DNA of 64,000 nt from Macrostomum lignano (lineage: Eukaryota). The notes beneath the pieces were generated by a model that was given only the letters and a program-made list of their open reading frames with translations, had not been told where the DNA came from and made no database searches. The DNA is taken from the NCBI GenBank assembly GCA_002269645.1, contig NIVC01000070.1, positions 496,001-560,000 of the forward strand, given 5' to 3'. Both the position numbers and the translations under genes were made by a program. Below, piece after piece: positions 7,211-41,464 of the stretch (within the stretch, counting starts at the first letter, position 1; each line of letters begins with the position of its first letter).

Positions 7211-10200
7211 ATGAGCAGCAGCAGCTCAGCTCAGAAGTGCTACTACTCGTATGTAGCAACTCGCTGCTTATCGTCATCGACCTTGGCAGATGGCAAGCCG
7301 AAGACGAGCTTGGAGACAGGCGATCTCGTTTTGACCGATTCGCCTCTGTTTAGTAAAGATATTATCAAGGGCAGAAAAGAGTCCACTGGAGAAACTGGAT
7401 CATTCCCTAGCGACGGTCTCAAGCGATGCATTCAGGCTCGGCTACTTCGAGACTTCAACAGGTTGCCAGGTGGCACAAAGGTGTTAATTACCGAGCTGAG
7501 CATCAAACCGCCTGGCTGCTCATTCTACTGCGCCGGGAGCACTTATTCCTTGCCTATTGATAAGTTTGATTTCGGTGAAGCCGATGACCTGGCAATTGCG
7601 ATGCATAATTATTCCGCTTTCGGCGTCGAAATCAAAGCCGGACAAATTGTCTGGACTTTGCGCAGGCCGACTCAGCATCGAAGAAAGTGGCTGGCATATT
7701 TAAACGGCAAAGCAGACTACTTTCCAGAGGAATATGCTCTGTCTTTGAATGAGGTAAGAGCCAGGCAGTCTGATCGTTGGATTTGAGTCAAATCATTTGA
7801 GACTTTAGAGCCTTAAAGTTTAATCGAGAATAACAAAATCGATGAATTTGACACTTGCCTTTTCCTAAAAAGAAAGGCAAACACTGCATTGATAAACTTC
7901 AACTATGTAAAAAACACATTTTGCAGGCCATGAATCAGCTAGTTAAATTTGCCAAGGAAGGAGACTTTGACAGTGTCCGTAAGCTGGCAAATCCGACACT
8001 AATGAAGATGCACGGCTTGCAAGGTCGCACCGTCCTGTTGATGCTAGCAGACGCTGATACTTACGCGAGGCGAACAGCAAAATGCGCTGACTACATGATC
8101 CACTTAGGCTGCAATCCTTCCGCTACGGATTCTAAGGGGGACACAGCCGCACACCTGGCGGCGGGAAACAATAATCTGCAACTCCTCGCTTTGCTAGCGT
8201 TTGAATCGAAGTGGCTGCAGAATTACCAGGGCCTCACGCCTCTCATGGTGGCGGTGGAAGCTGGCAAATGGAGGTGCATTAAACACCTGTTGCATCTCTT
8301 TCGGCAGAACAAATATCATCAATTCAAGACGAAATACCTGAATGAGATGAAGTCCTGTCAAGGTCTGTCAGCTTTGGATATCGCAAAGCGAGCCAAAATT
8401 GAAGAAATGATCGAGTTGTAGGTTGGACTGGCTTATTGACATTTGCAACAGTTTGTCCGATACAGGATTAGACCAGAATTATTACAAACTATTAATTATT
8501 GAAAATTTTAGTGAACTCGGACTTAGACCATCTGCTGGTTGTGATTGGCACATCCCTGTAAGTTAACTCATACAGGGGACGCTTAAAAACAAACATTTTA
8601 CTTTGCTACAGTTTTAGTAAAAACAAAGGCGGTGGCCGGCAGCCCGATACAACGCATTCGGCGACATCATCCCGGCTGAGACAATTCTGCCCATTCGCTG
8701 ACTCCTGAGCAAGAGCACCAATGCTATACGCAGACACGCACTCATACACATGCCCTGACTTTCTAATCATCAAGCATGTACACTCTCTGTGCTTTGGCAG
8801 CTGGCTCTCCTGGGTGTTGAATCGCACGGCAAGCCTCTGGCCAAATTTCCAAATGAATCGAATCAGGGGTCGTGACGCAATAGCCAGACGCGTTTATCAC
8901 TCATCTGCTCTGCCCCTCGTTGCTATTTTAGTTGATGGCTCAAAATTGTACGCAATGCAAAATTTTAGATTTTGTTTTTTTTCTATAAATTTTCAAAATT
9001 TTAAAGTCACAACTTCTTGCCAAGGAGATTAAAACTTCGTTAGAATTGATTAACTGAATGCCATTTTACTCTGCTCACACTCCACTAGGACCATTTGGCC
9101 CAGTTACAAGCTGTTGCTCCTTGCGAGCACCAGCGAACGATCTGCAAGTGCGATGTGCCAGACGAGAAAGGCCGAACCAAGCTGTGGAGAATTTCTAGCG
9201 GAACCGGAGTGTGCAGCGGCATCATGAACGAAGCTATTAGAGCCGATCCAACATGCGCAGATGCTACTGGCAACACCTGCCTACACGCGGCAGTAAACAG
9301 TGGAAATTTAGAAGCCGTGCGTGAGCTCATCGCACTCGACGTCAATGTGAACGCTCCAGCAGAGGACGGATCGACGCCGCTGATGCGCCTAGCCAGTAGC
9401 GACTGCTGCAGTGACTCACAGTCGGTGCAGGTGGCCAAAAAACTACTGGAGAATGATGCTAACTGGAATTTAAGAGACCGAAACGGATGCACTGCTTTGC
9501 AACTGGCTCGGAAAAGCAACAAGCATTCGCTTGTGAAGCTGCTTGAGGAGTAAGATTTGTTAGTTAAGTAGTACTCGTACTAAAGAAATTTCTAAGGCTC
9601 CTAAATCCTAATTAAAGGATGCGTGTAAGACCTTGTTAGTTTCACACTAGAAGCTTAGGTTGATGCCATTATGGAAGTAAAAGTTTGACTTATTTGATCA
9701 TCTGAAGTCTGACTTGTGAAAATACGTTCGTATATTATATATGCATTTAAACTACCTTTCAGATATGAAGGCAAGGATTATTTCGACACAGTTCAGTGAG
9801 TAATTTTTATTTTCACTCTTACGAGTATCCGGACGCCGTTTCAGTTAAGAATTATACATTACGCAATTGTCTGCCGAATTATATACACTAATTCGCTATG
9901 AAAAAACTGGATTTTAGACTTCCTCATAAATCTGAGGGCCCTGCAGCAGCAGAGAATTCCGAGCGCCTGGTATTTACTCCACATTCTGAGAAAAAAGCAC
10001 CACAGAATTTGTCTTCCCTGCACCCAGTCGCCAAATTCGCTCGTCTCCTGCAACAAGGCCAGGGTCTGCCGACGAACACATAAGTGAAGCTGAGTCTTAT
10101 TTGCCTGTAAGAAATCCTGTTCTAGAAAGTTACAATTCGCTCGGACAGACGCAGGTAGCGGTTGCTAGTAGTAACGGGGACAATACGACGCTAAGTAAGT

Positions 10201-12624
10201 TGCGTCAGTCGGTTGACAAAGAAGATCTTAAGCGAGCCGTTAACACGCCAGACAACTCGCTGAAGACGCCTGTGATGCTTGCCGCTTTAAATAATTATCC
10301 GACAACAATAAAGCTTTTGCACGAGATGGGAGCCACCGATCTCAGTCAAGGGGTAAGAGTAGCAGCAAAGTTTAAAATAGCGAATACATGTATTCGGAAT
10401 TAGAACTAACAACAACAACAAAGGCGTTACACAGTCCCCTAGTAAGTCGGTGGAGGGAGCGTCAGATAGGCGCGCCGAAGTGCCAGCGAGAGGACAATGT
10501 CGGGCCCATTGACGGTTTCGGTCGCCCCAGCGTCGCTCAAGATGCAGTCTACGTATCTCCGGGTCCTCGTTTGACCCCGCCTGAACGGTCCTGGCGTATT
10601 GAGCAGCTGCACAGGACGAGGGCAGGAGCTTTTAGCCCCGGATCACGTTGCTTGCCAGTTGGAGATGGTGGAGTTAGAACTAGCAGTATCAATGTCTTAC
10701 GCAGAGGGTCCCAGCACCCCACAAACATTGTAGCGCCCTCATAAAGAAAGCTCGATTTCCACCAATAACGAATGAGAGGAATTTAACTTTTGCCACCCAT
10801 TGGACGTGGTATTCACCAGCCTAGGAGACACAAGTAGGGGCGCCCATCAAGAGACAGAGATGCCAACCCAGGAGATCAAACCCAGACACCAGATGGCAGT
10901 GTAAAATTGATTTTTTGTCAACCTTTTCAGGACCGAGCCAAGCTAACGGCTCTTGCGCACGCGGCTATGCGAGGGAACAAGGACTGCATTGCCGTTCTGC
11001 TCTCTCTGGGCGCAGAGCCTCACACAGAAGACTTTAGCGGTAATACGCCTCTGATCTGGGCGGCTAGAGAAAACCACTTTGATGTAATTGGAAAACTGAG
11101 TGAGGTTCTGCAAAATCTGTCGAATTGGACACATCGTGGCGAGTATAATATGAGCGCGTTGGAGTGGGCGACTTACTTGCAGCATCATAAGATTGCGAAT
11201 TTGATTGTGCTGAGGTAAAGGCTTCTTTCTCTGCTCAAGTTTACCTCTTTACACTTCTTCCGCTTCAAAACTGTATTTGAGTGTACATTTGAAATTATAA
11301 TTTCTTTTCTAGACTTACACACAGTGAGCGTAAAAGCGCACAACTTTTACAGCGCATTTTCTGGTGCAGGCGTCTAGAGATACAGTGTATAGCAGTGTAG
11401 TGGAGAATGAAACTGATTGTCGTAATCTCATTCCAACTAGCGCTATCAAATAAGAAGCACACACTTAAGCCTTTTCGTTTCGCAGTTTTATTTTTATAGT
11501 CTCTTTCTCTCGTGCCTAAGTAACTGCTTTAGGCTATATTCAAGTGGTGTTTTGGCTTAATTGTCTGGCCAAAAAGCTAGGTAATCTCATCATTATACTC
11601 GTAGCTGGTATATCTTTATACGGCATTAAGCATCCATATTCTAAAGAATTCCTAACTACACTACTCACGAGTAGACAGAGCAAATATTCTTTAGATAAAC
11701 ATCGATCCAGCTTTCACAATTTTATAACCGTTGCCTCTGATAACGTAGGATATGAATTTGTCGTCTTTTATGAACATTTATAGCCACTTTTTTAAATCCA
11801 GCATCAACAGCCTCCAAACCGATGCTCGGGCTCAAGAAGCTGCACAGGAAATGCCATCAATTGAGGCTTCTGAAGCAATCAGTGCACAATTACCGCTACC
11901 TGCGCTTCTGCCCAACGACCGATACCGGATGCTGAGCAGGCCGAGCTCAAGAGGCGTTGCCATCATGATAAATAATGTGGATTTTGACAATACAGACAGG
12001 AGAAACGGTGCGATGGCGGACACCCATGAGACAGGACTGTACCAAGCCTTTGTCAAATTGGGATTGCGCGTTGAGACTCACCATAATTTGAGTAGCCACT
12101 TTTTCAACAGCCACAATCTAATCAGCCTAAACAGGCATGAGACAGAGTACGAGCAGCACGATGTGTTCGTGCTCTGCGTTATGAGCCACGGCGAGGACGG
12201 CCACATCATTGGTTCTGATGGTGGGCGAATCGAACTCGAGCCTTTGTTCAACCAGGTGCGCCAGTGCGACAGCCTCGCGGGCAAGCCGAAGATTTTTATA
12301 GTACAGGCCTGTCGCTTGTTGAGTACCTCCCATCCTGCAGAGTCAGCCAATGTCATTCGCGGGCAAGACTGTCTGTATATCTACAGCGCTTGCAGAGGTC
12401 AGCTGTCGGGGCGAGATCCCAACACTGGTTGCATATTTATTCAAGCGCTCAAAGACGAAATCTTGGCCGCCGACCTACGATCTGTCGAGTTCACTCACCT
12501 GCTGCCTAAAGTTGTCAAGCGAGTTCTGGAACTGACTAACGGCGCTCAGGTTGTGAGTTCGGAGACAACTCTTTCTAAGCTGCTGTGCCTTCCACCAACA
12601 CGCGATCTGTTAACCAATCTGTAA
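7211..12624 (+). CDS. SH3-like x3 / ankyrin-repeat / caspase protein, paralog 1 (~1038 aa if one apparent frameshift is corrected)
   Basis: Exons 7211-7753, 7927-8417, 8512-8557, 9089-9549, 9763-9795, 9918-10352, 10931-11214, 11802-12624, all GT-AG with the same phases as paralog 2. SH3 motifs TGETGSFP and KWLAYLNGKADYFPEEY; ankyrin motifs GDTAAHLAA, GLTPLMVAV, GNTCLHAAV, GSTPLM, GNTPLIWAA; caspase SHG and QACR. One extra A is needed in the A6 run at 9991-9996. Confidence 0.85.
11802..12624 (+). CDS. Caspase (peptidase C14A) domain exon of paralog 1
   Basis: RGVAIMINN..RRNGAMAD..VLCVMSHG..LAGKPKIFIVQACR..DCLYIYS..SGRDP..FIQAL..QV..TLSKLL; catalytic His/Cys dyad present. Confidence 0.92.
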
Positions 12625-13696
12625 ACGTCTAAAGTGCCATTTACTCATTTGAGCTCGTATAACTACATGTCCGAGCTATATAGCTTTAAACTTGAATGAC
12701 AGACGACTTCTTAGTTATACGGTCAGCCAGTTTTTTATAAACATGCCATTAACATTGACTGCAGTATTATACTCTGTGATACTTTTTTAAAGTTACTCGT
12801 ACACGAGCGTATATTAATACTTGAAAAATGTTTTATAACAGCAACATTGATATATAGCTACCTCTTGTGGATATCTAATTCTGTTTTTATAAATCTCTGC
12901 ACTAAGAAATCTCACGCGCGCCTCTACAGTATTAAAAACATTTTCGAACATTTTTAAGCGTTGGCATGCCTCGATCTAAAGCGTCATATGGCTTTTACCT
13001 AATGATTGTAAAGTAGTCTGATATGCTCTATATTAATCGTGTGGATAAACGCTGAATTCGCATTGATAGCTTCGATCAGAACAATTTTTTCCGTAGCTAC
13101 TAAAGATTCCCAAGGAAAAATATGGTATTGAGAATTAGACACAGTTAAAGAACTACATTTTCCATCGCTATTTGAAATGCGGGTGTCTGTCTTGGTTCTT
13201 AAAGTTATGTTCGATTTTGTATGCACCAGTAACTGAAATGCATTTGCTACATAAATACGAAAACTATATAGGCATCCATGTAACTTCTCATTCTTTTGAC
13301 ATGAATAGAGAATAGAATACTGAGCACTATACAAAAGTTGTAAAACTTGCACTCTAATTCTGTGTGATGTTGATCCTTTATTTATTTATTTCCAAAGAAA
13401 TGTTTCACTTTTATCTGTTTTCCACAATGAGACTGCAGGCAGCTATATTTATCCAGAAATTTGTTTTGGGACAACAAAGCAAGGAAAAAATCGTACCAAC
13501 TGTCATCCGCTGTGTAAAGTCAGTTTCTTCCTATTTCGGGGCATTCATTTCTTATGCAACTTTTGTGCGATCTCTACGCTTTTATTTTTTATATTGTCAG
13601 GAATTTTTAAGTTGAAATATAATTAAATTCAGTCAGCCATGATTAGAAATACAAAATGCACTTTATTTCTCATATTTATACTGACATTATACTTAC

Positions 13697-16488
13697 ATGC
13701 ATGTAACCTCCTCGCAGTTTGAGGAGGTCACCCGGAGTGATGGGCGCCTTGCGCGCCGGTGGCTTGGCGAGTTTGCGCTGGACACCGCGGAGGAGCAGGT
13801 CGATGCGGGGGTCGCGAGGAAGGCCGCGGCCGGTCTTGAGCTTGCAGTGCAGGTCTGCGGCGTTAATGTACGCACCGACACTGGCATGCGAGGAGAGGCG
13901 GTCGGACAGCGCGATGATGTAGTGCGCGACCTGCTGCAGAGGCGGTCTGGTGCTGTCGATGCGCATCTGCTTGCAGAACCGCTTCCAGGAGTCGATCTGG
14001 CAGCGGTAAGAGCGCGTGGTAGTCTCAGCGAAGGCCAGGTGGCAAAGCTCGCGGTAGCGTTTGCTGAAGTTCGCGCTCGGGACTTGAGGCGGGCGATCTG
14101 TTGGGCGAGAAATTCGCAGGTGGCTGGCGAGAGGGTGTGCTCTCTAAGGTTGCTAAGGTCAACGTGAACAGAGCCAAAGAGCCGGAGCAGGAAGTTTGTC
14201 AGCTCGCTGATGTCATCGGCTCGGCTGCCACTATCAGCGAAGATCTGGAATGTCCCGGGGACGTGGAAGGCCTGGACGGAGAGGTCGCGGTGCGCAGCGA
14301 GGAGCATCAGCTGTTGCAGAGCCGAGTTGACGACCCGATTTGGCGACGAGCCCTTGTTGATGGCGCCGACTGCGGCGGTGCTGTCAGAGTAGATCACAAG
14401 CTGGCTGCCCAGTTGCAGCTGCTGCTGGAAATGCAGGGCCGTAAGCACTGGCGCGAGACTTTCCTTGAAGTTGACGTGCAGCGGCTCGATCTCGGTTGAG
14501 TCGCGGTGCCAGTCCATGATGAGCCAGCTGGTGATGTCTGGGCCGCGGATGATGCCGCAGCCGCCCCAGTTGGACGCGTCGGACTCGATGGCCCAGCTGG
14601 GCCCGTTAGAACGCCAGATTTTGCAGCTGGGGGAGGCGGCCAGGCAGGCGTCCCACCAGCTAAGGATCTCGCGGAGATCATTGTGCACGCGCAGTTTATG
14701 CCGCTGCTGCTTCAGGTCGCTGAGTTCGAGCAGGAGTGGTCTCAGGAAGCACCTCCCGATGCGGACCACCTGGCAGACCCAGTTGATGCGGCCACAGAGC
14801 GATTGGAGCTGGCGCTTGGTGATGCGCTTGCGAGAGAGCGCGGAATGCAGCTGAGACTTGGTGGCGTCGAGCTTGTCCTTCGGAAGCTCCAGCAGGCCGC
14901 TGACGGTGTCGATGAGGACGCCCAGGTAGACTAGTCTGGTGCACGGCGCCACCACCTTGCTCCAGTTGATGGAGAAGCCAAGCTTCCGCAGCAGATTGAG
15001 CAGGGTGTTGAGAGCGAGCTGGCAGTCGTCCTTGCTGGAGGCTGCTATGGCGAAGTCGTCGAGATAACTGCCGATATCGTTGAAGCCCCGTCTCTGCATC
15101 ATGCGCTTGACAGCCTGGCTCAGGCGGTGGAAAACTTCCATGGAGGCAGCAGCGCCAAAGGGGAGCCGCGTGTCGCAGATGTACGAATCGCTGCGCTGGT
15201 CGCTGAATTTCCACTTCAAGCCGGTGAGCCGAAAATCGTGCGGGCTGATGCCGACACTCCGGTAGGCATTGGCGAGGTCGACTTTGGCCATGAACCAACC
15301 GGGCTGCAGCTTGGCGGTGAAGTAACTGACGGTCTCGAACTTGATTCTGTTGTCGGAAGAAAATCGGCTGTTTAGGGAGAGACCCGGAGGGTTAGAGCAG
15401 TCGTAGATGAGACGAATCTTGTTGTTGCTTTTCGGAATGGCGCCAAGGGCGCTGATGACCTCCGGTTTGTCATTGACTTGAACGTAGCGGCCATTAAGGA
15501 TTTACTCTCGCATCTGCTGCTCGACCAGCTGCCGGTAACTGTTGACTGATAGGTAGTTCTGGATTTCTGACATAGTTGAGGCTCTTTCTGACGGGTCAGG
15601 GCAGGTGAGTTGGAAGCCGTTGCGGATGCCATTCAGCAGGAATTCGCGGTCAGGATCATCAGCCAGCTCAGCTTCCCAGGCGGCTGTGGCGAGGTCGGAT
15701 GAGAAAGCGACGGACTCGAGGGGCTTGGGACAGGGCCAGCCGGGGGGCAGCGGGGGTTCGACTTTGGCTTCGGCCGGGGCAACTGCGCTGCCAGTTGAGC
15801 CCCCCGGCCGGCCGCGATCTAGTTTTTTTGAAGTGCAGAACTGGCGCGGGTGCGCCTCGTAGCAGGCGGAGCAGACGTGCCTGAACTTGCAGTCGCGCCG
15901 TAGGCAGCCGTTGCGGTTGAACTTCACGCACAGCTCCCGCCCCTCAGGATCGATCGGGCCGACGAAGCCGGACGGCTGCTGCTTTGGCCTACTGGGCTTG
16001 AAGTTGGTGCGCTGGGAGATCGCGTGCCGCCCTGATTTGACTTTGGTGCCAGAATGTGCTTGGATAGCGACTGCCGCTCCCAGCTGCCGCTCGACTGGTG
16101 TTGCAGGATCCTGAAGTCTTCATCGTAACAGTTGAGGGCGGCATGACTGAAACCCTGGTGCATAAACTCGCCGAACTGCACACAGTAGTGAACGTAGGCC
16201 TTCAGCTGTTCAAGATCCACCGCGCCATCCTTAACGGTGACCAAGAACCCTTCGTCGAGGAGTTTCAGCAGGATTCGGTTGCTGCCTGCTACCCACTGAC
16301 CCGCCGAGATCTGCTCAGTCCGGACTCTAGACTTCTCGCCAGAGGCAGGCTCCTCGCCATCACGGTTGATAAAGTCCTTTACCAGAAGGGGCTTTGACGG
16401 TCCTGACGGCCTGGCAGAAGTGCTGTAGAGGCCTTGAGGGCCCAGGTCTGGCAGTCCCAGCTCCGGCTCATAGGCAGCAGGGGACCGG
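13697..16488 (-). mobile_element. Ngaro/DIRS-like tyrosine-recombinase retrotransposon, 3' part (gag C-terminus, RT, RNase H, truncated YR); degenerate
   Basis: Gag Cys/His finger (ELCVKFNRNGCLRRDCKFRHVCSACYEAHPRQFC); pol start (WEAELADDPDREFLLNGIRNGF); RT AKVDLANAYR..LPFG..YLDDF; RNase H ESDAS..DS..AD; overlapping YR N-terminus (..LLRGVQRK..RKAPITPGDLLKL) cut off at ~13700. No methyltransferase between RH and YR, as in Ngaro. Several frameshifts and a stop. Confidence 0.85.
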
Positions 16489-16853
16489 TGTCGCGAAATT
16501 TCAGCTTGCTCTAATAGAATTCACTTTCTCCCTTTTCATTTTCTTCCATTCCCTGTGTGCCTAGTCCATCTTCTATCTGCCGCGCTCTACGTACTGTACA
16601 TTCTTATCTTGTTTTCCGATTATCGATCGGTGAGTTTTCAGTCAGCCCCCCCTCTCGGTCTCGTTAGAGCATTTTAGCCCTCGCCCTTCTTACCCATTTC
16701 TTCTTATCTTTTCTCTCCCCCCTCTCTCAACCACGTAAATAAATATACTTGTTTGGGCCCTGCGCCCACTTACTGGCGTATCTTAGTATTCAATTTTCAA
16801 CAGTATTCAACATCCTGTTCAACTTCTAGTTTTTTAGTCTATTTTTCTCGACA
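16489..16853 (+). repeat. BEL/Pao 5' LTR
   Basis: 365-bp near-identical direct repeat of 23635-24002. Confidence 0.95.
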
Positions 16854-17782
16854 TGGCGCCCGACTGAATTGAACCCGAGTTATATTCTGCTACTATCGAT
16901 ATTCACCTCGTTCACTACACTGCTTCTGCTTGTGACCCTTCGTTCGGCTCGTTTATCGTCTCGCATCGTATCGATTTCGTTACCTCTGCGTTCGTCCGCT
17001 CGTCTTCGTCGAATCTGCCTTCGTTAACTCTTCTTCTTCTTCTTCTTCTTCTTCTCGCTTTTTGTCGCCTTTCGGCATAGCTCACCGGGAGTCCCTTACT
17101 CCAGCTCTTACGCTTCGCATTGCCGATCTTGTCTCTCTCGCCTGCTCTCTCCGGTGATTCACGATGGTTTTGTTTAAAGAGGTCCCACGGTTCGTTATGC
17201 CGTGGTCACTCTGCCGGGTGCGGTTTTGCCCGCGGGACGTGGTTTTCAAATCACGGCCGCGGGCCTCACCGCCCCCCCCGGTTCCTTATTTGCCAGACTG
17301 GCACGCCAGTCTGCCCGCTTGGCACCAATCGTGGAGGTTGGGAACCATCGCCAAGCGCCTTCGTTAACTCTGCGTTCGTCTGCTCGTCTTCGTCATCGTC
17401 TTTGCTTCTCATCGGGCTCAAGGCTTCAGACTCTGTGCTCACTCCGGATTCAGGACTCAGGACGGACGAACAGGTCAGCTGCCTGGGGAAGTCGATTCGT
17501 CTGCCAGCTAAGTTTTCATTTGGACTGTTTCAGTTGGCTGTTCGAGTTTCCATTAATTTATAATCCTTTCTATTCATTGCGTGTTGTTTGTTTCACTGCT
17601 TTGCTATCAGTCACGTAGTCGTAGATTTTCACTTTGCAATTTTATTCACATTTTCCTAATTCAGTAAAATTTTCGCTTGCTTTGGGTGTGCACTGAGGTT
17701 AGTTGTGGGTCCTACTGCGCTCCTCTCTGAAATCTCTCACTGCTAGCTGGTTGGTTGCTGCTCGTTGCTACTCGAGGTCGTT

Positions 17783-24002: not shown

Positions 24003-24007
24003 ACCGG

Positions 24008-24720: not shown

Positions 24721-25068
24721 ACCCCCGTCAAATTTGCACTACTCCCAGCAGATAATTTTTTTGAAAATAAATTTCTACGAAAATGAGGATTTTAATTTTA
24801 CACAACTTACAACGATTGTACAATTCGAATACATATTCGGGTGAATGAACATTGCGCGTACATCACGTGCGAATCGATAATGCGCAGACACACATAGGTG
24901 ACAGTCGGCATTAGCTGATTCACATATCAAAGGCGAGCCCCTGGCTGGAACTCTCACTATTTGTTTTAATTAGAGGCAGGGGGGTCGTGTGCACCCTGGC
25001 GCACTTTAAGCGACATAGGTACGCAACCGGCGAGAGGCATTACTGCGCATTCCGCCGACTCCCCTGAG

Positions 25069-25984: not shown

Positions 25985-26970
25985 ATGATGGTTCCGTCTC
26001 CCCGACTTCTGTTGTGCGTGGCTGCCTGCTGCTTTCTGTCACTGCAGACCGTCTTTGCCGGATGCCGATCGAAGTGGAAGCAGCTCCGAGGCGACATCAC
26101 AGAGTACAAGCTGATCACTGTGCTCAATTTTCCAAAGATTACCGACTGTCTGATGAAATCGTCAGCGGCCGAGGCTCACGCAGCCTCCTTCGACGCTGAG
26201 TCGGGCGACTGCGCCCTGCTGCAGTGCGACCGGTGCGGCAGGGACGCCTGCAGGAAGTGTCGACACGAGAAGGACGCGAGTCTGCCGATGCTCTGGGTAG
26301 GTGACCCGTTTCACTACATTTTTTCCATTTAGCATGATAACTGATATAGTTATTGAGCCAAACAGTGGATTTTAATCGACGTTGCTGGTTTGTACTTCAG
26401 ATCAAGGATCCACCGAAGACTTGCTGGAAGACGTTCCAGCGCAGAGTCGACGGTTCCGTCAGCTTCAACCGGAACTGGTCGGAGTACGCGAGCGGATTCG
26501 GTCAGGGCGAGAGTCTCAACTACTGGATGGGACTGGAGCAGCTGCACCAGCTCACCGCCACTGGAGTGTGGAGAGTCCGCTGGGAGTTCAGCGACTGGAA
26601 TGACAACTGGTACTGGGCTGAGAATGCTCCGTTCTCTGTAGGCCCAGCGGCTGACAAATACAGGTGCTCGATGGGTCCGCTGGACGCGAGCAGGTCGAAC
26701 GTTAGACAACCGACGGGGTTAGCTTCTTCATCAATGAATGAGTCGTTTAGCACTCCTGATTCTGATAATGACAATTGGCCCTATGGGAAGTGCGCTGGAC
26801 GTTCTGGCTGGTGGTACAGTTAATGCGCTTTCATGAGCCCGAATGAACTTTACCCGTATCCTCCTTACGCGTATGATAACATGGGTATCTACTACTTTTT
26901 GTCTCACTCTGACCCCGTGTTGCGAGTGAAATGCTCCATGAAGACGTTCGAGCGCATGATTCGGCAGTAA
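25985..26970 (+). pseudogene. Secreted fibrinogen-related domain (FReD) protein with a Cys-rich N-terminal exon; premature stop
   Basis: Exon 1 25985-26296 (signal peptide), intron 26297-26400, exon 2 26401-26970: FQRRVDGSVSFNRNWSEYASGFG..YWMGLEQLHQLT..FSTPDSDND..C..GWWYS. In-frame TAA 26821-26823, then the frame continues CAFMSPN..MIRQ* to 26970. Confidence 0.85.
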
Positions 26971-31800: not shown

Positions 31801-34800
31801 TGCTTCCCCGAGTTCCCCCTGTGTTTGATGTCCCTGTGTACGCTCCTGAGGGCCAACCCCTTGAGGCAATGAGTTGCTACTCATGTTGTACGGACCACTG
31901 ACTATAAGAAATTTGTCACCCCTGTGCGTTCGATCCATGTACGTGTAGGTGTTCAGGTGTCAGCGAGCTGAGACGGGTACCTTTTTTGTCTTCTCGCTGG
32001 CTGCGGGTTGACCGTCGCCAGAAGTTGCGCAATTTCCCAAAGCCTTTGAAAATTAACTAACAAATACAATATAGCAACACGGAATGGTTAAGTAAAGAAT
32101 TCGATGAGCAAGGTGCAACATAAAATTTAATTCAAAAAACCGAAACAAAATTTTAGACCAAACGATGAGTCGCTAAAACTGAGCTTCAATGCAACAAGTA
32201 CGGAGAGAAACCTTCAGTCAGCTCAGACGCCCGTTTTGCTAAGACTGGCGGCGAAAAAGCAACAGCCACCTATGAGGCAATTGAGTTCAGGTGATCCACC
32301 GCAAAGGCACATACCCTCGCGAGCGCGTCAGTTGAGAAGACCTAGTAGTGAGATTCCAATCTCATTCGGTGGACCTAGCAGTGACCGGCCGTTGTATTCA
32401 TCGTCGAGAACCCATAAGGACAAAACTTACGTACCTTTTAACTCACAACAACAATGTGTCTTGAAAAAGCCAGATTTTTTTATTGCACCAGATAGTCGAG
32501 AGAACGAGGCGTTTTTGAATCCACAAGTGGCGTCAGACTGTGGTGCATCTTCATCTCCGCGAGTGAGCCATGAAAACGAGGCTTCCAAATTTACGAGCCT
32601 TACCGAAAACTCTTCAGAGCAATCTGGAAACGAGGTGTTTTCAGATTCTCCTGAGCGACCCGGATTTGGGAACGAGGTTTCTTCAGAGGATCCTCCCGAG
32701 CGACCCGAGGTTGGGAACGTTGTGTCTTCAGAGGATCCTCCCGAGCGACCCGAGATTGGGAGCGAGGTGTCTTTAGAGGATCTTTCTGAGCAACCCGAGA
32801 TTGGGAACGAAGTGTCTTCGGATCCTCCTGAGCGACCCGAGATTGGGAACGAGGTGTCTTCGGAGAATTCTCCCGAGCGACCCGAGATTGGGAACGAGGT
32901 GTCTTCGGAGAATTCTCCCGAGCGACCCGAGATTGGGAACGAGGTGTCTTCGGAGGATCCTCCCGAACGACTTGAAATTCGGAAAAAAGCGTCTTTGAAT
33001 CCTCCCGAGCGACCCGAGATTGGGAACGAGGTCTCTTCAGAGGATCCTTCTGAGCGACCTGAGAGTGGAGTAGTGTCTTTAGGCCCATCGGAGCGTCCAG
33101 AGAGTGGAGTGTCTTTAGATTCCACTGAAATTAAGTTATCCCCTAAGCTAATGGAGAGACCTGAGAGTGGAATATCTGTGAACTTGCCTAAAACTAAGTG
33201 TGGCACCTCTTCATCTCAAGAGGAAATTCAAAAAGGCAACGCGACTTCAAGCAAGCTAAAGCGGTCAAGGAGGACGTTGTCTTCAAGAAAAATTGTAGAA
33301 AAGCATTGCTTAGCTGAAGAGTCAAGTGTAAAACAGAGCAAAGATGCAGACTATGAGTCGGATCTAAAACACCAGATTTCCGAAGACTGCATCATGTCTC
33401 TAATCAAAGAGAATAAAGCGAGTTTATCTCTAAATGACTTGAACGAACTGCCACTTATTGCGGCAGCAAAATATGGCGATCCAAACCTTTTGCTCAATCT
33501 GCTAAACCACGGAGCTTCGCTCAATGAAAAGGACACCCTCGGACAATCGCCGATTACAGTAGCTAGTTACTATGGAAAGAGTGAGATTCTTAAAGCCTTG
33601 GAGGGGCGCCGCACTCTGGTTGACGAAGTTAACACGCGGGATAATTCGCTCAAAACTCCACTGATGCATGCCGCTGCTAACGACCATCCGGATGTAGTTG
33701 TGCTATTGCACAATATGGGAGCTGATGTGAACAAAAAGGTGAGTTATAGCTATATTCGTTTATCAAGCCCCCCCCCCCAATACCTGTGTGGCTTCTCAAA
33801 AGCATTGCTGGCATTTTGCTACCAGTACGGCAAGTTAAGCTGAGTCGGTCGCGGCTAGTACGCTAGCGCATTAAACTGAGCTTGAGTCTGTACCTGCTGT
33901 GAGTAGTGATAGCGCAATAACGCGGCCGAGTCTCGCGTCCCTGTATGTGTAGCTGTAGGTTTAGTCCCTGTAGGCTCGATTCCCTGTAGGTGTAGCTGTA
34001 GTTGTAGTCCCTGTAGGTGTAGCTGTAGGTTTAGTCCCTGTAGGCTCGATTCCCTGTAGGTGTAGCTGCAGGTGTAGTCCCTGTAGGTGTAGCTGTAGGT
34101 GTAGTCCCTGTAGGTGTAGCTGTAGGTGTAGTCCCTGTAGGTGTAGCTGTAGGTGTAGTCCCTGTAGGTGTAGCTGTAGGTGTAGTCCCTGTAGGCTCGA
34201 TTCCCTGTAGGTGTAGCTGCAGGTGTAGTCCCTGTAGGTGTAGCTGTAGGTGTAGTCCCTGTAGGTGTAGCTGTAGGTTTAGTCCCTGTAGGCTCGATTC
34301 CCTGTAGGTGTAGCTGCAGGTGTAGTCCCTGTAGGTGTAGCTGTAGGTGTAGTCCCTGTAGGTGTAGCTGTAGGTGTAGTCCCTGTAGGTGTAGCTGTAG
34401 GTGTAGTTCCTGTAGGTGTAGCTGTAGGTTTAGTCCCTGTAGGTGTAGCTGTAGGTGTAGTCCCTGTAGGTGTAGCTGTAGGTGTAGTCCCTGTAGGTTC
34501 GATTCCCTGTAGGTGTAGCTGTAGGTGTAGTCCCTGTAGGCTCGATTCCCTGTAGGTGCGGTCCCAAAAACTTTGGGTTTACAAAAATTGGGCCTGAGAG
34601 CTTTTTGTCTGTTGTTGACCAAGATTCATCGACATTTTATTTGCACATGTCGAACGATCCTCTTAACATCTAATTGCGCCATCCTCAAGCCATTAAATCG
34701 TGGAGATCACCCTTTCACGCTCTTTAGGATCGGTGTGAGCAAACCGCGCTGACCCACGCAGCCATTCAAGGCTCCGACAGGTGCGTCGAAGCTTTGATAA

Positions 34801-37800
34801 AGCTGAAGGCGGAGGCCCACACTGTGGACTATTGCGGCAACACGCCGCTCATCTGGGCGGCCAGAGAGAATCACAGTAGAGTTGTGGTGGCACTCGACCC
34901 GGCCTTGGACCAGCCGGCCTATTGGTCACACCGTGGGGAGTACCACATGTCAGCGTTGCAGTGGGCGGTGTACTTAGGCCATCGGGCCGTTGAGGATACC
35001 ATCAAGCAGTGGTGAGAGTTGATGCGATTAACTACATGTACAACAAGTACAGCAGAAGCGGCCTTGCTTGAGCAATATACAGTTAAACACTACTCCCAAG
35101 AGATTCGTTCACACCATCATCAAATTACGCCAAATTTTGGCAGGATGACTGCCAAATGAAGGATTATACGAGCTAGATGTGCAAGAGCACCTTTTTTGTC
35201 CTCGTTTTGTACATTATTACGTTAGTTCTGTAATTCGATGGCTAATTTGGTAGCGGTGTAAACAAGCCTCCAACGAAACGTCCGAGAAAACGTTTTCGCT
35301 CGAAGCCATTTACTTAGTGTAGAATAGCGTCAAAACTTTGGTGCGCTTGAAGTTATACAAGATAGAAGAAAATGCAATGCCTTCGCTCGAGCGTATAGCT
35401 GCGGTCTCTAGGCATATATGAAAGGCACAATAGATGGAATAAACTTTTGTTAAAACGGTATTCAGGCAATAACTATGAAAGAATTGGCATCTTCATAGCA
35501 TGCTACGAGCTAGTTCTCGCAACACTGGTTTTACGAGCAAACTGTCCATACCTCTCGAATATTATACAATAGAACTTTTCTCAAAGACTAGCGCTTTAGA
35601 CTGAAATTTTGTTCTATGCATACCAAAGCTGTCTTAATTTCGAATGGCTGGCTAAGCACTGAGGCGTTAAGGCCAGCAGCTGTATATGGTACTTCAAATA
35701 CTCGTCGTCGTCATTTTCTTTATGCGGTAAAATAGTGAGCAGAAAACTGCCTATAGTCTTTGCTCCGCAGCTAAAACTATACAGCACGTATAGCAAAGAG
35801 AAAACAAATGGGCATCGTAAAAAATTCTATTAGAACTTTGTTTAACTGCAATGACTGGGTATTCACCCCGCAAGACGTGGTTCAAAATAAAGCATTAGTT
35901 AAAAAAGCTATATGCTAAATAACGTCAAAGGTCTCAAAATGTAATGCTTCGAAAAGTAAAAGTCCACCTGTTGTGTTCTAGTTGATTGATTAAATTCAAT
36001 TCAGTTGGAGACACTTGAGTCTCGCTCAATATATTTATACTCATGTGCACGTTGAAAACAGTGTTACGCAATCGAAACAACGATACCATGATTGAACGCA
36101 CGATGCATATAAGGTAATTGAACAATTCTAGCCTCAAAGTTAGTTAGTTACAACACCTAGGCCCGATGCACAGTCACTACATTCTCCCCCTTCCGGAAGA
36201 GGATAACGCGCCGGTTGCCGTCGAGCTCGAGTTGACCTTCGAAGTTCAGGTGGAGGTGGCGGCTCGCCCGTCCGTGGGGCGGAGCCGGCGGCAGCGGCAA
36301 ATCGAACCAGTCGTCCTCTTGGTCGGCCGCGCCGTTGTCAGCCGGTGGGCTGTTGCACTTAACCAGCCGACTCGCTTGCCACTTTGTACCGTCGGACAGC
36401 ACGAAGGTGTTGCGCCCTGCTTTGGAGGCGATCTTTAGCGGTTCCTTCAGTCGGGTCGCCAGCTTGTGCGCTCGGTACGGCCTCTGTCGCCAGACCCAGT
36501 CTCCGGCCTGGAGCGTAGAGTCACGAGCCCGCCTTCGCTTGTTGGTGTAGTCGGCGTTCTTGGCTTGCCTCTCAATGATAGCGTCGCGCAGATCGCTGTC
36601 GTCCCGCTGTTGCACTGGAGTTGGCCTGAGCAGCTGCAGTCCGGACCGCAGCTTGCGCCCGATCATCAGCTCGGCTGGAGTCAGCCCGGTGAGAGCGTGC
36701 TGGCTGGTCCTGTAGGTCTTGAGCACCAGGTCGATGGCGTCCTCGAACTTCGCTCCCGCCCTCAGGTTCGCTGCCAGGCCCTCCTTCAGACTCCGGTTGA
36801 ATCGCTCAACTCCGCCGTTGCCTTGCGGGTAGTACCGGCTCACTCGGCTGTGCTTGATGCCCTCGGCTCGCAGGAACTCTTCGAACTCGTCGCTGACGAA
36901 CTGGGGTCCGTTGTCGCTGATCAGCATCTTCGGGACTCCCCACCGGCCGAATAGCTTCCGAAGCGTCTTGATGATGTTGGCAGAGGTGACGGTTTCCATG
37001 GCTGCAATCTCCGGCCACTTGCTGTACAGGTCGTGGATCACCAGTAGAAACCGCTGGTGTCGAGGAGCCGCGGCGACCTCGCCGAAGATGTCGATCTCGA
37101 CCTTGTCCCACGGTCCATCTGGCCACTCGATTGGTGTCACGATCGTCTGTTGAGGCTTGCCGGACTTCTCCGCCAGAGTGCAGGCCGTGCAGTTCTTGAC
37201 GTAGTCCTCCACCTGCCGGTCAATTCCAGGAAACCAGACCGTGTCGCGGCACCGCTGCTTTGACCGAACGACGCCCGGATGCCCTTCGTGGGCCTCCTCG
37301 ATGACTTGAAGTCGCAGGCTCGTCGGGATGATCGCGCGTTCACCACGACCGAGGCACTGACCGTTGTTCCAGCAGAACAGCTCGTCCCGGACGTTGAAGT
37401 ACGGCTTTAGAGAGCTGTCCACCTTCGTTGGCCAGCCGCCCGAGATGTACTGCAAAACCGCCTGCAGCACTTCGTCCTCCTTGGTCGCCGTTGCCAGTGC
37501 GTCTGCCGTCAGCGTTGTCTTCGAGTCGACGACTGCGTAGACGTAGCCCTCCTCGTCGGTCTCCTCGGCTGGAACGCGCTCCGTCGTGGCCCATCTGGAC
37601 AGCATGTCCGCGCACTTGTTGTCAGCGCCAGGGATGTGCTCAAACCGAACGTCGTAGCCGCGAAGTCTCTCGACCCATCGATGAATGCGAAGAGGCCTGT
37701 GCCCCATGCCTTTCGAGTCGAGCAGAGTTGTCAGGGCCTTGTGGTCGGTGCGCAGCGTTACTCGTCTGCCGTATAGATAGTAGTGCCAGCGTTCGATGCT

Positions 37801-40800
37801 CCATACACAGGCCAGGGCTTCTCGCTCTCCGGCTGAGTATCGCTTTTCCGCTGGGCTGAGTGCTCTCGATGCGAACGCGATTGGCACCTCTTTTTCGTTT
37901 TGTACTTGGCTGAGCACTGCCCCCAGTCCGTCTAGACTTGCATCGCAGGTGACGTACGTCTCAGCTTGGCAGTCAAAATGAGCTAACACTGGGCTGCTGG
38001 TTACGGCTGACTTGAGTGTACGGAAGGCTGTACGTTCCCGCTCACCCCAGTGCCAGTCCGCGTCCTTTTTGAGCAGTTGTCTCAGAGGCTCGGCAATTGC
38101 TGAGTAATGCGGTATGAACTTGTGCAAAAAGTTCACTGCCCGAGAAACGATTGAATTTGCGCGACCGTTGATGGCTCAGGAATTCTTAGAATTGCGTCGA
38201 CGTTGCACTTGGTCGGTTTGATGCCGTCTGCAGAGATGACCAATCCGAAGAAATCCACGCTCGCCTGCCGGAATTTGCACTTCTCTCGATTGAGTGTGAA
38301 GCCTTCGCGATGAATCCGCCCTAGGACTTCTCGGAGGTTCTTGTCGTGCTCAGTCTCGTCCTTGCCGTGCACCAGGATGTCGTCCACGATGTTGATGGCG
38401 CCAGGAGCTCCTCGAAGCACCGTCTGCAGGGCTCGCTGGAAGGCAGCTCCGGAGCTAGATAGCCCGAATGGCACCACGGTGAACTGGTACAGGCCGGCAT
38501 CGGTGATGAAGCACGTCAGTCCTCGAGAGTCTGGATGCAGCGGAATCTGCTGGTAGCCTTGACGCAGGTCCAGCTTGCTGAAGCACTTCGAGCCGTTGAT
38601 GCTGGCCGATAGGTCCTCGATTGACGGTACCGGATAGCGGTCCGCGATCACCGCCTTGTTGACCTGCCGCAGATCCACGCAGAGACGAACCTTGTTGGAC
38701 TCCTTCTTGCGCGTCACGACAACGTTGCTAACCCACTCGGACGCGTCGACCTTCTCAATGATGCCCTGTTGCTCCATCCGGCTGATCTCTGACGTCACTT
38801 CGTCCTTCAGGCCGATCGGCAGCTTCCGCATTGGCTGAGACACTGGCTTGACCGAGGCGTCGATCTTTGTCCGGTGAATGAAGCTCTTGGACCGGCCCAG
38901 ACCGTCGAAGATTCCGGGGAAGTCGCGCTCGATCGTAGTCTCGCTGATGCTCATCACTCTGTTGTCACCTTGGAAGATTTTGAATCCGAGGGCCTGAAAC
39001 AGGTCGCGGCCCAGGATGTTCGCTCCTTTGTCGGCGACGTAGAATGTGGCTTCTGTCCTGATGCCGTTGAACGTCACTGGAAGCTCGACCTTGCCGATGG
39101 TCTTGATCGCAGATCCGCCGTATGCCTCCAGTTTTGTGCTCGTCGGAAGCAGCGGGTGCCTAGCGAAGGACTTCTTGAACGTCTCCATGTTGAGCAACGA
39201 AACGGCGGCACCGCAGTCGATTTGCAGTCGAATCAGCTGTCCGCCCAGACGGCATTCGCAGAATAAGCTGTCTGTGCTCTTGTTGTTCACGGCCAGGACC
39301 GTCAGACTGGACTCTGCAGGCTCTTTGGTGTCGATCGCAGAGACCGCTTTCATGCGGCACATTTTCGCGAAATGGTTCGTCTTGCCGCATCGTCTGCATT
39401 TCTGGCCCATCGCCTTGCATTCGCCCTTGTGTCCGTGGTTGCCTCCGCATCGAGTGCACTTTGGACCTGCTGCTGCGGTCTTCTCATGGCGAGCAGCTGG
39501 CTTCGGCTTCTTGCTCAGCGCCTTCACGTGGAGCTCTGGGCCGCTGACCTGCTTGGCATCTTTGATGGCTGCTTCGATTCGCTCAGCCTTCTTGATGGCG
39601 TCATCTAGCGTCAGATCGTCCTCCTCCATCAGGAGTCTTTCCCTAATGCGAGGTACGCAGGTTTTCTCCACAAGTTGGTCTCGAATCATTTCGTCGTGAA
39701 AGGTGTCAAATTTGCAGTTTGTTGCCAGTTCTCTCAGGGCCATCACGTAGTCTCCGATGCTCCGCCGTCGTGCTGGGCTCGCTGCCGAAAGGCGAAGCGC
39801 TCTGCTATGACGCTTCTCGACGAGCTGAAAATCGCCTTCAGTGCCGTTTTGGTCTCCTGAAGCGACTTGCTTGCATCGACGTTTGCAGCTCGGCGGCGTC
39901 CTTCCTCACCAAGCAGATGCAGGAGGATCGCCTTTTTCCGACTCTCTGATGCCTCTTCGAGAGCTCCAGCTACCAGGAAGTTCTCAAATGACTTGATCCA
40001 CCTTGCCCATGGCACAGGAGGTTCGCCTGGTACTGGTTGAGACTCCGCTGGGTACGGGAGTCCGCTCGTCGCCATTTGTTGTGTTCTAGTTGATTGATTA
40101 AATTCAATTCAGTTGGAGACACTTGAGTCTCGCTCAATATATTTATACTCATGTGCACGTTGAAAACAGTGTTACGCAATCGAAACAACGATACCATGAT
40201 TGAACGCACGATGCATATAAGGTAATTGAACAATTCTAGCCTCAAAGTTAGTTAGTTACAACACCTAGGCCCGATGCACAGTCACTACACCACCCCTGAC
40301 AATGCTGTTGGTCTAGACTCGAAAATTTACTCACGAGTGTAGAATTGTTTCGTAATATTTTCACTAGAGCGGAAATCTACCAGCTCAAATCAAATATTCT
40401 TAAGCAGCGAAAGGGGCTAAAAAGCTAAAAAGTATTTTCGATGATGTGAAGTTTCGAACTTTAAGAGCAAAATCCGCACTCTTGAGGAGTCTCAAACAAT
40501 GTCGACTTGAAATTTCAAACTTTTTGAGAATTTAGGGAGCCTGCGAAGTAAAACATTGCTTAGGAAGTACATGTGATATTGTCAAACAACATCCTCTCAA
40601 AACAGCATTCGCAGACATCAAAGAGACGCTACCGCAGAGTCGGCAGCAGCTGCCGACGACGACGACCACGAAACTTTATCGTCGCCATGGAGCGAGGCGC
40701 TCGAGGCTGCGGACAGCGTAGCTCAACAGCCGACTCTGAGTCCGGTCGATGTTCAGGAGAGATACTGCATGACAGCCAGCTTCCGAGGCGTTGCTATAGT

Positions 40801-41464
40801 GATAAACAACATCGATCCAGAGTGTAACAACTCCGGTTTTAACGAAAGACAAGGCGCCATGGCAGACAGCAGCCAGACCGGACTGTACCAGGGCTTTAAG
40901 CGGCTGGGCCTGTATGTTGAGCTGCACAAGAACACTACTAGCCACTTCATGAAGAAACCCTTGCTAAGCTTAAACAGACCAATATCTGACTATGCACAGC
41001 ACGACGTATTTCTTTTGTGCTTGATGAGCCACGGTGAACATGGCTACATCTGCGGCTCGGATAATAATAAAATTTTATTGGAGTCGTTGTTTGAACAGGT
41101 GCGCGAGTGTCCCGGACTGGCTGGCAAGCCGAAGATCTTCGTCATTCAAGCCTGTCGCGAGGCGGGTACCCAACAGGCGACACCGCGGACTTGCCTACAA
41201 GGCTTGGAAGACTGTCTGTACATCTACAGCACCTCGGAGGGCCTGCCGTCGCACAGAGACCCTAACACTGGTGGCGCATTCGCGCAAGCGCTCAACAAGG
41301 TCATTTTGAGCGCCGATCTAAGGAGCAAAGAGTTCACCCACCTGTTGCCAAAGGTGGTTGACCAGGTTTATCAAGAAACCAACGGACAGCAAGTTGTTGA
41401 ATCGGTAACAACGCTTAGAAAGCTGCTGTACTTTCCAATTAGGGAGTCGCAGAACAGAAACTGA
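28817..41464 (+). CDS. SH3-like x3 / ankyrin-repeat / caspase protein, paralog 2 (1450 aa, open frame)
   Basis: Exons 28817-29368, 30094-30596, 30676-30727, 31108-31595, 31685-31717, 32157-33738, 34728-35011, 40606-41464; total 4353 nt, no stops. SH3 motifs TGQTGIFP and AVVVRAYSAREEDE..GWWLGEYNGR; ankyrins; caspase SHG and QACR. Confidence 0.88.
32630..33120 (+). repeat. Coding tandem repeat (~42-45 bp, SSEDPPERPEIGNEV-like)
   Basis: About 10-11 in-frame acidic/Pro units inside exon 6 of paralog 2; absent from paralog 1. Confidence 0.9.
33939..34557. repeat. Intronic 27-bp minisatellite (CCCTGTAGGTGTAGCTGTAGGTGTAGT) with interspersed Pol III B-boxes
   Basis: Tandem units. GG(C/T)TCGATTCC at 33973, 34043, 34194, 34291, 34496 and 34539. 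Confidence 0.9.
35969..40289 (-). mobile_element. Full-length Ty3/Gypsy (Mag-like) LTR retrotransposon in the last intron of caspase paralog 2
   Basis: Two apparently identical 213-bp LTRs (35969-36181, 40077-40289; TG..CA), TSD CCACC (35964-35968, 40290-40294), PBS TGGCGACGAG (40074-40065), PPT AAGGGGGAGAA. Confidence 0.97.
36157..40075 (-). CDS. Gypsy gag-pol, split by three apparent 1-nt deletions
   Basis: Gag (FRQRAQ..LRELATNCKF, knuckle CRRCGKTNHFAKMC), protease IDCGAAVS, RT (LDLRQGYQQI, VDDI), RNase H (CDAS..AFAS..ERE), integrase (HEGHPG..CTAC, EIDIFG, SDNGPQF, GVERFN). Frame breaks at ~39762, ~38140 and ~36277. Confidence 0.9.
40606..41464 (+). CDS. Caspase (peptidase C14A) domain exon of paralog 2
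   Basis: RGVAIVINN..ERQGAMAD..LLCLMSHG..LAGKPKIFVIQACR..DCLYIYS..SHRDP..FAQAL..TLRKLLYFP. Confidence 0.92.

Follow-up and report, generated by a model that had tools for sequence, protein, structure and literature searches.

Two tandem Macrostomum lignano genes predicted to encode caspases with an SH3- and ankyrin-bearing prodomain

Introduction

In the textbook scheme of caspase activation, adaptors carrying CARD or DED domains bring the zymogens together. How, then, might a long caspase that lacks such a death-fold prodomain be brought to activity? The question is raised by two genes, here called G1 and G2, in a 64,000-nucleotide (nt) stretch of the genome of the flatworm Macrostomum lignano (GenBank assembly GCA_002269645.1, contig NIVC01000070.1, positions 496,001 to 560,000 of the forward strand). 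This whole stretch is referred to below as the window, and positions are counted from its first letter. An initial annotation, made from the letters of the window, had described each gene as encoding three SH3-like modules, ankyrin repeats and a C-terminal caspase, and had not recognized this architecture as a described family. After building and comparing gene models, on balance we favor the view that G1 and G2 are old tandem paralogs, each a single gene for a long-prodomain caspase of the apical type that would be recruited and activated via its prodomain.

The predicted layout of both proteins, from the N-terminus, is an SH3 domain, a Cys-containing module and another SH3 domain, followed by 8 ankyrin repeats, a linker, 5-6 further ankyrin repeats, a second linker, and the p20/p10 caspase. 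Ankyrin prodomains are already known from flatworm caspases. What is new relative to the literature that we searched is the SH3-bearing form, its occurrence in a free-living species alongside relatives of the Mab-21 type, and the exon cassette common to them.

Gene models of the two paralogs

Coding blocks were delimited from stop-to-stop open reading frames (ORFs) and from tblastn and tblastx comparisons between both regions, after which the splice sites were read directly. These comparisons yielded, for each gene, six large collinear coding blocks and a conserved 33-nt micro-exon. The resulting model of G1 (7211-12624, + strand) comprises 8 exons, with 3006 nt of coding sequence for 1001 amino acids (aa), and that of G2 (28817-41464, + strand) comprises 8 exons with 4353 nt for 1450 aa; both frames are open from ATG to stop. 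All 14 introns follow the GT-AG rule, and the phases 0,2,0,2,2,0,2 occur in each gene, so that the duplicated eight-exon structure with identical phases described in the initial annotation was reproduced at the same positions. The two proteins are identical at 473 of 990 aligned residues (47.8%). The parts of the two genes, all on the + strand, are as follows.

7211-7753, +, G1 exon 1: N-terminal region with three modules
7232-7426, +, G1 module 1 (residues ~8-72): probable SH3
7427-7573, +, G1 module 2 (residues ~73-121): PGCxFYC motif
7574-7753, +, G1 module 3 (residues ~122-181): SH3
7927-8417, +, G1 exon 2: ankyrin repeats 1-4 (Pfam Ank_2, 6.9e-12)
8512-8557, +, G1 exon 3: 46-nt micro-exon, the weakest piece of the G1 model
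9089-9549, +, G1 exon 4: ankyrin repeats 5-8 (Pfam Ank, 2.9e-17)
9763-9795, +, G1 exon 5: 33-nt micro-exon encoding YEGKDYFDTV, with phase-2 introns on both sides
10028-10352, +, G1 exon 6: linker and ankyrin repeats 9-10 (Pfam Ank_2, weak); first exon of the cassette described below
10931-11214, +, G1 exon 7: 284 nt, ankyrin repeats 11-13 (Pfam Ank_2, 1.3e-12)
11802-12624, +, G1 exon 8: linker and complete caspase domain (~11950-12579; Pfam Peptidase_C14, 1.1e-29)
12001-12003, +, G1 codon Arg795
12187-12189, +, G1 codon His857
12304-12306, +, G1 codon Gln896
12310-12312, +, G1 codon Cys898
12412-12414, +, G1 codon Arg932
28817-29368, +, G2 exon 1: SH3 region (Pfam SH3_9, SH3_1 and SH3_2)
30094-30596, +, G2 exon 2: ankyrin (Pfam)
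30676-30727, +, G2 exon 3: 52-nt micro-exon
31108-31595, +, G2 exon 4: ankyrin (Pfam)
31685-31717, +, G2 exon 5: 33-nt micro-exon
32157-33738, +, G2 exon 6: ~440-aa insert, then ankyrin repeats at the C-terminal end
34728-35011, +, G2 exon 7: 284 nt, ankyrin (Pfam)
40606-41464, +, G2 exon 8: linker and caspase domain (Pfam Peptidase_C14, 5.1e-30)
41030-41032, +, G2 codon His1307
41153-41155, +, G2 codon Cys1348

The phase-0 acceptor and phase-2 donor of G1 exon 2 are kept in G2, and the micro-exon 5 of G1 is conserved with its G2 counterpart in the tblastx comparison. An exit from exon 2 in phase 2 and an entry into the next large exon in phase 0 call for a small exon between exons 2 and 4; splicing exon 2 straight to exon 4 was rejected because these phases are incompatible in either gene. 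When the GT-AG candidates able to restore the frame in this interval were scored pairwise between G1 and G2, no conserved pair emerged, and exon 3 was chosen from the listed candidates by its splice context, i.e. a strong acceptor and a strong donor, in both genes. In G1, no other candidate restores the frame and has both a strong acceptor (here ttttag) and a strong donor (here gtaagt), and the acceptor region of exon 3 is common to G1 and G2 (ttttag↓.GAA.TCGG).

The alignment of the paralogs places in G2 exon 6 an insert of ~440 aa, rich in Ser, Glu and Pro, that is not in G1. Within it, positions 32625-33068 form a tandem repeat (45-nt period, 10.1 copies) that is translated into ten 15-aa units, GNEVSSEDPPERPEI; seven PERP (PxxP) motifs lie in these repeats, between the SH3 region and the caspase.

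The N-terminal SH3 region

Three SH3-like modules had been proposed for exon 1, of which the third and, with less certainty, the first were upheld. For module 3, a profile built from the two paralogs matches, over its last ~55 residues, the SH3 domains of Vav2, DNMBP and CIN85 in the Protein Data Bank (PDB) with an E-value of 1.2e-5, and hhalign assigns it a probability of 97.3% (E 2e-11) against a small SH3 reference alignment that was in part entered by hand. Residues 131-170 of G2 also match Pfam SH3_9 (2.5e-7, 30.9 bits for a cut-off of 30) and SH3_1 (9e-6, 25.6 bits for a cut-off of 22.9), and Pfam on G1 exon 1 gave no match. By these sequence criteria, module 3 is certain to be an SH3 domain.

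Module 1 is probably a divergent SH3 domain. In G2, Pfam SH3_2 is over its cut-off (8.4e-5) and matches best at residues 18-70, i.e. in this module, and the profile of module 1 has two PDB matches only, both to SH3 domains (E 0.33 and 0.75). The hhalign probability is 27% (P 7e-4), with the correct register, and the WW dipeptide is absent. Module 2, of ~50 residues with a conserved PGCxFYC motif, retrieved no SH3 domain in the PDB profile search or in Pfam at E≤10, and no test gave it an SH3 signal.

A word-index protein search with the SH3 region, either from G1 or as the G1 and G2 alignment, returned no match, yet it also missed an automatic model of G1 with an identical N-terminus (P0003, see below); its negatives are thus no evidence that homologs of the SH3 region are absent.

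Ankyrin repeats and the caspase domain

Pfam ankyrin families were detected in exons 2, 4, 6 and 7 of both genes. Counting by eye and with a consensus scan gives ~13 repeats for G1 (8 in exons 2 and 4, 5 in exons 6 and 7) and ~14 for G2 (8 and 6), in line with the two blocks and 13-14 repeats of the initial annotation. The absence of a death-fold prodomain was likewise borne out: no exon longer than 50 codons in either gene matches CARD, DED, Death or PYD in Pfam at E≤0.1. The prodomain measures 775 aa in G1 and 1220 aa in G2.

The caspase domain lies wholly within the last exon of both genes, and 166 caspase chains of the PDB match it at E<1e-5, led by caspase-3 (4.4e-18), with caspase-6 at ~4e-18. 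The His/Cys dyad noted initially is present in both proteins, in VMSHGEDG and IVQACRL for G1 and in LMSHGEHG and VIQACRE for G2, aligned to H121 and C163 of caspase-3; the last Gly of the active-site pentapeptide is replaced by Leu in G1 (QACRL) and by Glu in G2 (QACRE). In the S1 pocket, the Gln of QACR and the Arg of S-x-R-D-P-N-T-G align to caspase-3 Q161 and R207. The Arg of R-x-G-A-M-A-D, invariant between G1 and G2, falls within one residue of caspase-3 R64 in the HMMER alignment, so that this third assignment is slightly ambiguous. With the dyad and the residues of the Asp-binding pocket kept, an active, Asp-directed protease is predicted. Metacaspases, paracaspases and bacterial orthocaspases were considered and rejected, because the domain is most closely related to animal caspases and has an S1 pocket of the Asp type.

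A Q-x-D↓A sequence stands at the start of exon 8 in both genes (LQTD↓A in G1 and HQRD↓A in G2) and is a candidate site for prodomain cleavage. The sequence (E/Q)D↓C-L-Y was tried as an inter-subunit cleavage site and rejected, given that it aligns to the structural ADFLY strand of caspase-3 and not to IETD↓S.

Constraint on the whole protein

In each structured domain, the SH3 region included, the Nei-Gojobori comparison of G1 with G2 gave pN values of 0.30-0.40 against pS values of 0.65-0.74. The corresponding dN/dS of ~0.1-0.35 is approximate only, because synonymous sites are near saturation, and this saturation also implies that the duplication is old. Such a synonymous excess in every part of the sequence indicates constraint across the whole protein, in agreement with the earlier proposal that these diverged paralogs keep their catalytic motifs under purifying selection.

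Related Macrostomum caspases and a shared exon cassette

An exhaustive HMMER search of 1.84 billion cluster-representative proteins with the caspase profile returned as its top six matches proteins that are all from M. lignano (P0001, P0003, P0004, P0005, P0008 and P0013), followed by generic animal caspases. Two of these, P0004 (PAA89054.1) and P0005 (A0A1I8GZ94), carry, ahead of ankyrin repeats and a C-terminal caspase, a protein kinase and a second caspase-like domain, the latter with QTHRD or QAEKQ where QACRG is expected. P0008 (PAA59752.1), P0013 (PAA93319.1) and the further protein P0158 (PAA80948.1) combine ankyrin repeats and a caspase with a weak match to Mab-21_C, of the cGAS family, at 22-25 bits, i.e. 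at or under the Pfam cut-off.

The caspase-domain phylogeny suggested as a check in the initial annotation was built by neighbor joining with 200 bootstraps from 153 caspase units among the HMMER matches, with taxa picked by similarity to the query; the sequences of the parasite ankyrin (ANK) caspases were also taken from the match list. A Macrostomum clade (G1, G2, P0004, P0005, P0008, P0013 and P0036) was recovered in 193 of 200 replicates, and a clade of parasitic-flatworm ANK caspases (P0129 from Cichlidogyrus, P0072 from Trichobilharzia, and P0121) in all 200. The two clades were joined in 1 of 200 replicates, a result to be read in the light of the crude method and of the query-based choice of taxa, and the neodermatan ANK caspases stood nearest to the DED caspases. 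In this tree, G1 and G2 are members of a caspase clade known to date from Macrostomum alone.

The relatedness extends to gene structure. P0004 and P0008 were mapped exactly to their genomic loci, L002 (NIVC01000166.1) and L003 (NIVC01002235.1), respectively; the former also holds a second kinase-caspase gene, head-to-head with that of P0004. The last two introns of P0004 and P0008 are at residues and phases (0, then 2) homologous to those of G1 and G2, one before the D of D(R/S)xxxTA(L/V) and the other in the codon that immediately follows the final ankyrin helix. The common cassette thus consists of a linker-plus-ankyrin exon (phase 2 in, phase 0 out), an ankyrin exon (phase 2 out) and a single caspase exon. 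Its penultimate exon is 293 nt long in P0004 and 284 nt long in the other three genes (G1, G2 and P0008).

The kinase- and Mab-21-type paralogs share with G1 and G2, in addition to this cassette and their caspase clade, the motifs NTPLIWAAR, (E/Q)DC(L/M)Y and STL(R/S)K.L.(F/L)P. They differ by heads that are unrelated to the SH3 head, and G1 and G2 have an extra block of 8 ankyrin repeats (exons 2 and 4). A common cassette with differing upstream parts is a signature of exon shuffling, by which different N-terminal heads (SH3; kinase and second caspase-like domain; Mab-21-like) would have been placed before a cassette entered in phase 2.

Independent gene models

Automatic annotation has already modeled G1 as P0003 (UniProt A0A1I8G2I6), with SH3 region, ankyrin repeats and caspase joined in one product. 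Its N-terminus is identical over 181 residues to the product of G1 exon 1. Exons 3 and 5 are missing from P0003, as are the last portion of exon 2 and 46 residues within the caspase fold; as intronic sequence is also taken in, P0003 is a poorer model of G1 than the 8-exon model built here.

The 3' part of G1 is 99% identical to M. lignano BOX15_Mlig004809g2 (P0001), which confirms the junction between exons 7 and 8. Together, the matches to P0003 and P0001 mark the window as nuclear DNA of M. lignano. P0001 derives from a related copy of G1 on another contig of the same assembly (L001; NIVC01000713.1, GCA_002269645.1) that differs structurally from the window. In this copy, exon 1 is missing its initial 52 codons, exon 2 is frameshifted, and exons 3-5 are replaced by a 6.9-kb insert, so that it is either a degraded duplicate or a mis-assembly. 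The insert (1984-8855 of L001) contains long minisatellites and an ORF with a Src-family-like N-terminus (MGCCFSKH..., Pfam SH3_1 4.6e-14).

For the more distant paralogs, the NCBI models P0004 and P0008 unite head and cassette in a single product. As they splice upstream coding exons into the equivalent phase-2 acceptor, they support by analogy the join between exons 5 and 6 in G1 and G2.

Comparison with known caspases

Flatworm "ANK caspases" were described by Krasovec et al. 2024 (Genome Biol Evol, PMC11463336; preprint 10.1101/2023.12.11.571055), and an ankyrin caspase was first noted in Schistosoma (Lee et al. 2014, as cited in PMC11463336). These proteins are reported to be monophyletic, sister to DED caspases and restricted to parasitic flatworms, and they were suggested to be initiators whose activator is not identified (PMC11463336). 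For M. lignano, only a caspase with a kinase-like pro-domain was reported, sister to the ANK caspases in a Bayesian tree (PMC11463336); this is evidently of the P0004/P0005 type. According to the authors, there is no other unexpected pro-domain in flatworms, and SH3 is not mentioned (PMC11463336). They also report that FADD is absent from flatworms and DED caspases from most of them (PMC11463336), which leaves room for another route of apical-caspase recruitment.

The impression that the architecture is undescribed must be narrowed accordingly. Our literature search with ankyrin or SH3 terms found no protein combining SH3, ankyrin and caspase, but flatworm ankyrin caspases were published in 2014 and 2024, and the UniProt entry of P0003 already joins all three parts. 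G1 and G2 resemble the ANK caspases in their flatworm host, in the ankyrin prodomain before a p20/p10 caspase and in the lack of CARD or DED. They differ by the extra SH3 region and by having 13-14 ankyrin repeats in two blocks; moreover, the ANK caspases were described from parasitic flatworms, whereas M. lignano is free-living. In P0129, the Cichlidogyrus ANK caspase, the stretch between ankyrin repeats and caspase is ~220 residues long, unlike in G1 and G2, and the terminal repeat of the Macrostomum family (W-x3-GE-x-M-x-AL-x-WA) was not seen on reading its sequence. Judged from their sequences, G1 and G2 would constitute a form with SH3 that has not been described before and that stands either inside the flatworm ankyrin-prodomain caspases or alongside them.

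Among better-known enzymes, the effector caspases 3, 6 and 7 (MEROPS C14A) are the best matches of solved structure (E ~4e-18, ~30% identity) and share the dyad and the Asp pocket; they differ by a prodomain of 20-30 aa, far shorter than those of G1 and G2, and by QACRG in place of QACRL or QACRE. The initiators (caspase-2, -8, -9, Dronc and CED-3) resemble G1 and G2 in that a long N-terminal protein-interaction prodomain precedes the protease, and recruitment with proximity activation is presumed, by analogy, to be shared with these death-fold enzymes. Unlike G1 and G2, in which none was detected, they carry a CARD or DED.

Ankyrin-caspase combinations are also found outside flatworms. In the jellyfish Sanderia malayensis, P0017 (EukProt) has ankyrin directly before caspase, as in G1 and G2, in two tandem units; it shows no detected SH3 and lies outside the Macrostomum clade in our tree, an indication that ankyrin and caspase domains were fused at least twice in animal evolution. 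An ANK caspase of Alitta virens with ankyrin repeats before the caspase is mentioned in PMC11463336.

Proposed activation and alternative readings

In the mechanism that we propose, the protein would be an apical, initiator-type cysteine protease with specificity for Asp, in which the SH3 and ankyrin prodomain substitutes for CARD or DED. The prodomain would dock the zymogen on proline-rich or other partners, or on itself, so that caspase domains meet and are activated by induced proximity, and the Q-x-D↓A at the start of exon 8 could serve as the point of prodomain release. In G2, the PxxP repeats might offer the SH3 domains an in-built ligand, with autoinhibition or self-association as the outcome.

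Several observations weigh against this reading of G1 and G2 as single genes for apical caspases recruited through SH3 and ankyrin domains. Some concern the gene models: exon 3 is weakly conserved between G1 and G2, a stop codon directly follows the exon-2 donor in G1, and P0001, the independent NCBI gene model, backs the join between exons 7 and 8 only. They bring up a different reading, which we regard as having a rather small probability, namely that each locus is two mis-joined genes, one for an SH3-ankyrin adaptor (exons 1-2 or 1-5) and one for an ankyrin-caspase (exons 6-8 or 7-8). As M. lignano uses trans-splicing, the two products may even be co-transcribed and then separated by that process. 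Two genes would also agree with the in-frame ATG just 5' of exon 4 in G2 and with the extent of P0001, a 356-aa ankyrin-caspase that starts inside exon 7; such a short model is, however, expected from a copy with the upstream damage described above. Moreover, in G1 neither exon 4 nor exon 6 has an ATG close to its start, all seven intron phases are compatible and have been kept after saturation of synonymous sites, with every exon constrained, P0004 and P0008 have upstream coding exons spliced into the phase-2 entry of the cassette, and P0003 unites the SH3 region, ankyrin repeats and caspase. The other adverse points concern the protein. Module 2 has no hhalign match to module 3 or to the SH3 alignment, and AlphaFold2 models of exon 1 from a 2-sequence alignment, with G1 or G2 first, were unusable (mean pLDDT 40 and 33) because the alignment was too shallow. 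The PERP motifs are without the flanking basic residue of class I/II SH3 ligands and G1 contains no PxxP, so that the G2 repeats are a weak lead as internal ligands. Finally, the closest caspases by sequence are the effectors 3, 6 and 7 and not initiators, and the inter-subunit linker is short, with no obvious Asp site beyond the structural (E/Q)D before the CLYIYS strand.

These last features, an effector-like catalytic domain and the lack of an obvious auto-processing Asp between the subunits, would suit a single gene with a non-death role, in which the prodomain anchors the caspase at a cytoskeletal or membrane scaffold for local, limited proteolysis, e.g. in differentiation, spermatogenesis, regeneration or similar. 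SH3 and ankyrin are a typical scaffold pairing, as in SHANK-type proteins. We consider such a role improbable, though it differs from recruitment of an apical caspase in the downstream outcome only, and nothing here separates the two. Equally doubtful in our judgment is the self-contained sensor-protease put forward in the initial annotation, where it was likened to an NLR fused to its effector. We take this to mean that the SH3 and ankyrin region binds a danger or non-self ligand directly, that the ligand relieves autoinhibition or drives oligomerization, and that one chain is receptor, adaptor and caspase. A sensing role is favored by the potentially ligand-sensing Mab-21-like (cGAS-family) and kinase heads on the equivalent cassette in sister genes, by the expansion of the family, with tandem pairs here and at the P0004 locus, and by the fibrinogen-domain gene between G1 and G2. 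Nevertheless, SH3 and ankyrin domains normally bind proteins and not foreign molecules, Pfam scans of G1 and G2 revealed no NACHT, LRR, TIR or other recognized innate-immune sensing domain, and the Mab-21 matches of the paralogs lie at or under the Pfam cut-off. The varied heads on one cassette make a modular recognition-plus-protease design plausible, and adaptor-mediated recruitment fits them equally. By extension, Macrostomum might have shuffled SH3, kinase and cGAS-like Mab-21 heads onto the cassette to generate sensor-executioner fusions acting in immunity or stress-induced death, a suggestion that we also rate as unlikely; if true, the family would follow an inflammasome-like logic with no death-fold adaptors, in a lineage in which FADD and DED caspases are reported to be lost.

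Returning to G1 and G2 as prodomain-recruited caspases, ankyrin-prodomain caspases, thought to be a speciality of parasites, are now found in a free-living and experimentally tractable flatworm for which RNA interference and transgenesis exist. The several head types on one cassette, one of them with SH3, provide a testable entry to caspase activation independent of the death fold, and they bear on whether flatworm ankyrin prodomains have a single origin or multiple origins. The value of these data is that of a gene-family and annotation result and not of a demonstrated new mechanism.

Other elements in the window

The remaining features of the window are as follows.

13693-15291, -, reverse-transcriptase fragment downstream of G1
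17765-23236, +, BEL/Pao-type long terminal repeat (LTR) retrotransposon polyprotein, intact, 1823 aa (Peptidase_A17, DUF1759, RVT_1, rve)
23986-24414, -, SAP-domain ORF (2.5e-08), adjoining the retrotransposon insertion
26350-26820, +, Fibrinogen_C exon (Pfam 9e-28), between G1 and G2
33937-34558, 47989-48470 and 52100-59450, minisatellites or low-complexity arrays
36157-39746, -, Ty3/gypsy-type pol in two ORFs of 659 and 537 aa (Pfam RVT_1, RT_RNaseH, Integrase_H2C2, rve), in G2 intron 7
44200-47720, -, ABC transporter exons (ABC_membrane, ABC_tran)
59421-60164, -, exon with a borderline CRIB/PBD match, downstream of the tyrosine-kinase exon
61508-62380, -, tyrosine-kinase catalytic-domain exon (PK_Tyr_Ser-Thr 7.9e-52)

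The Ty3/gypsy-type pol, on the opposite strand, accounts for most of the 5.6-kb intron 7 of G2 and lies outside the gene product. Around the BEL/Pao element, 7.5 kb (16490-24002) are absent at the corresponding place in L001, and this insertion distinguishes haplotypes, copies or assemblies. Concerning the Fibrinogen_C exon, fibrinogen-related proteins are often immune lectins in invertebrates.

At the 3' end of the window, the kinase exon and the CRIB/PBD match suggest, on domain content, an ACK-like kinase gene at 59421-62491 on the - strand. Short-period repeats break up the ABC transporter exons and make long spurious ORFs on both strands. A 27/54-nt array is located in G2 intron 6, and arrays of Q/T-, C- and V-rich codons are responsible for the strong GC and AT skews of the 52-60 kb region.

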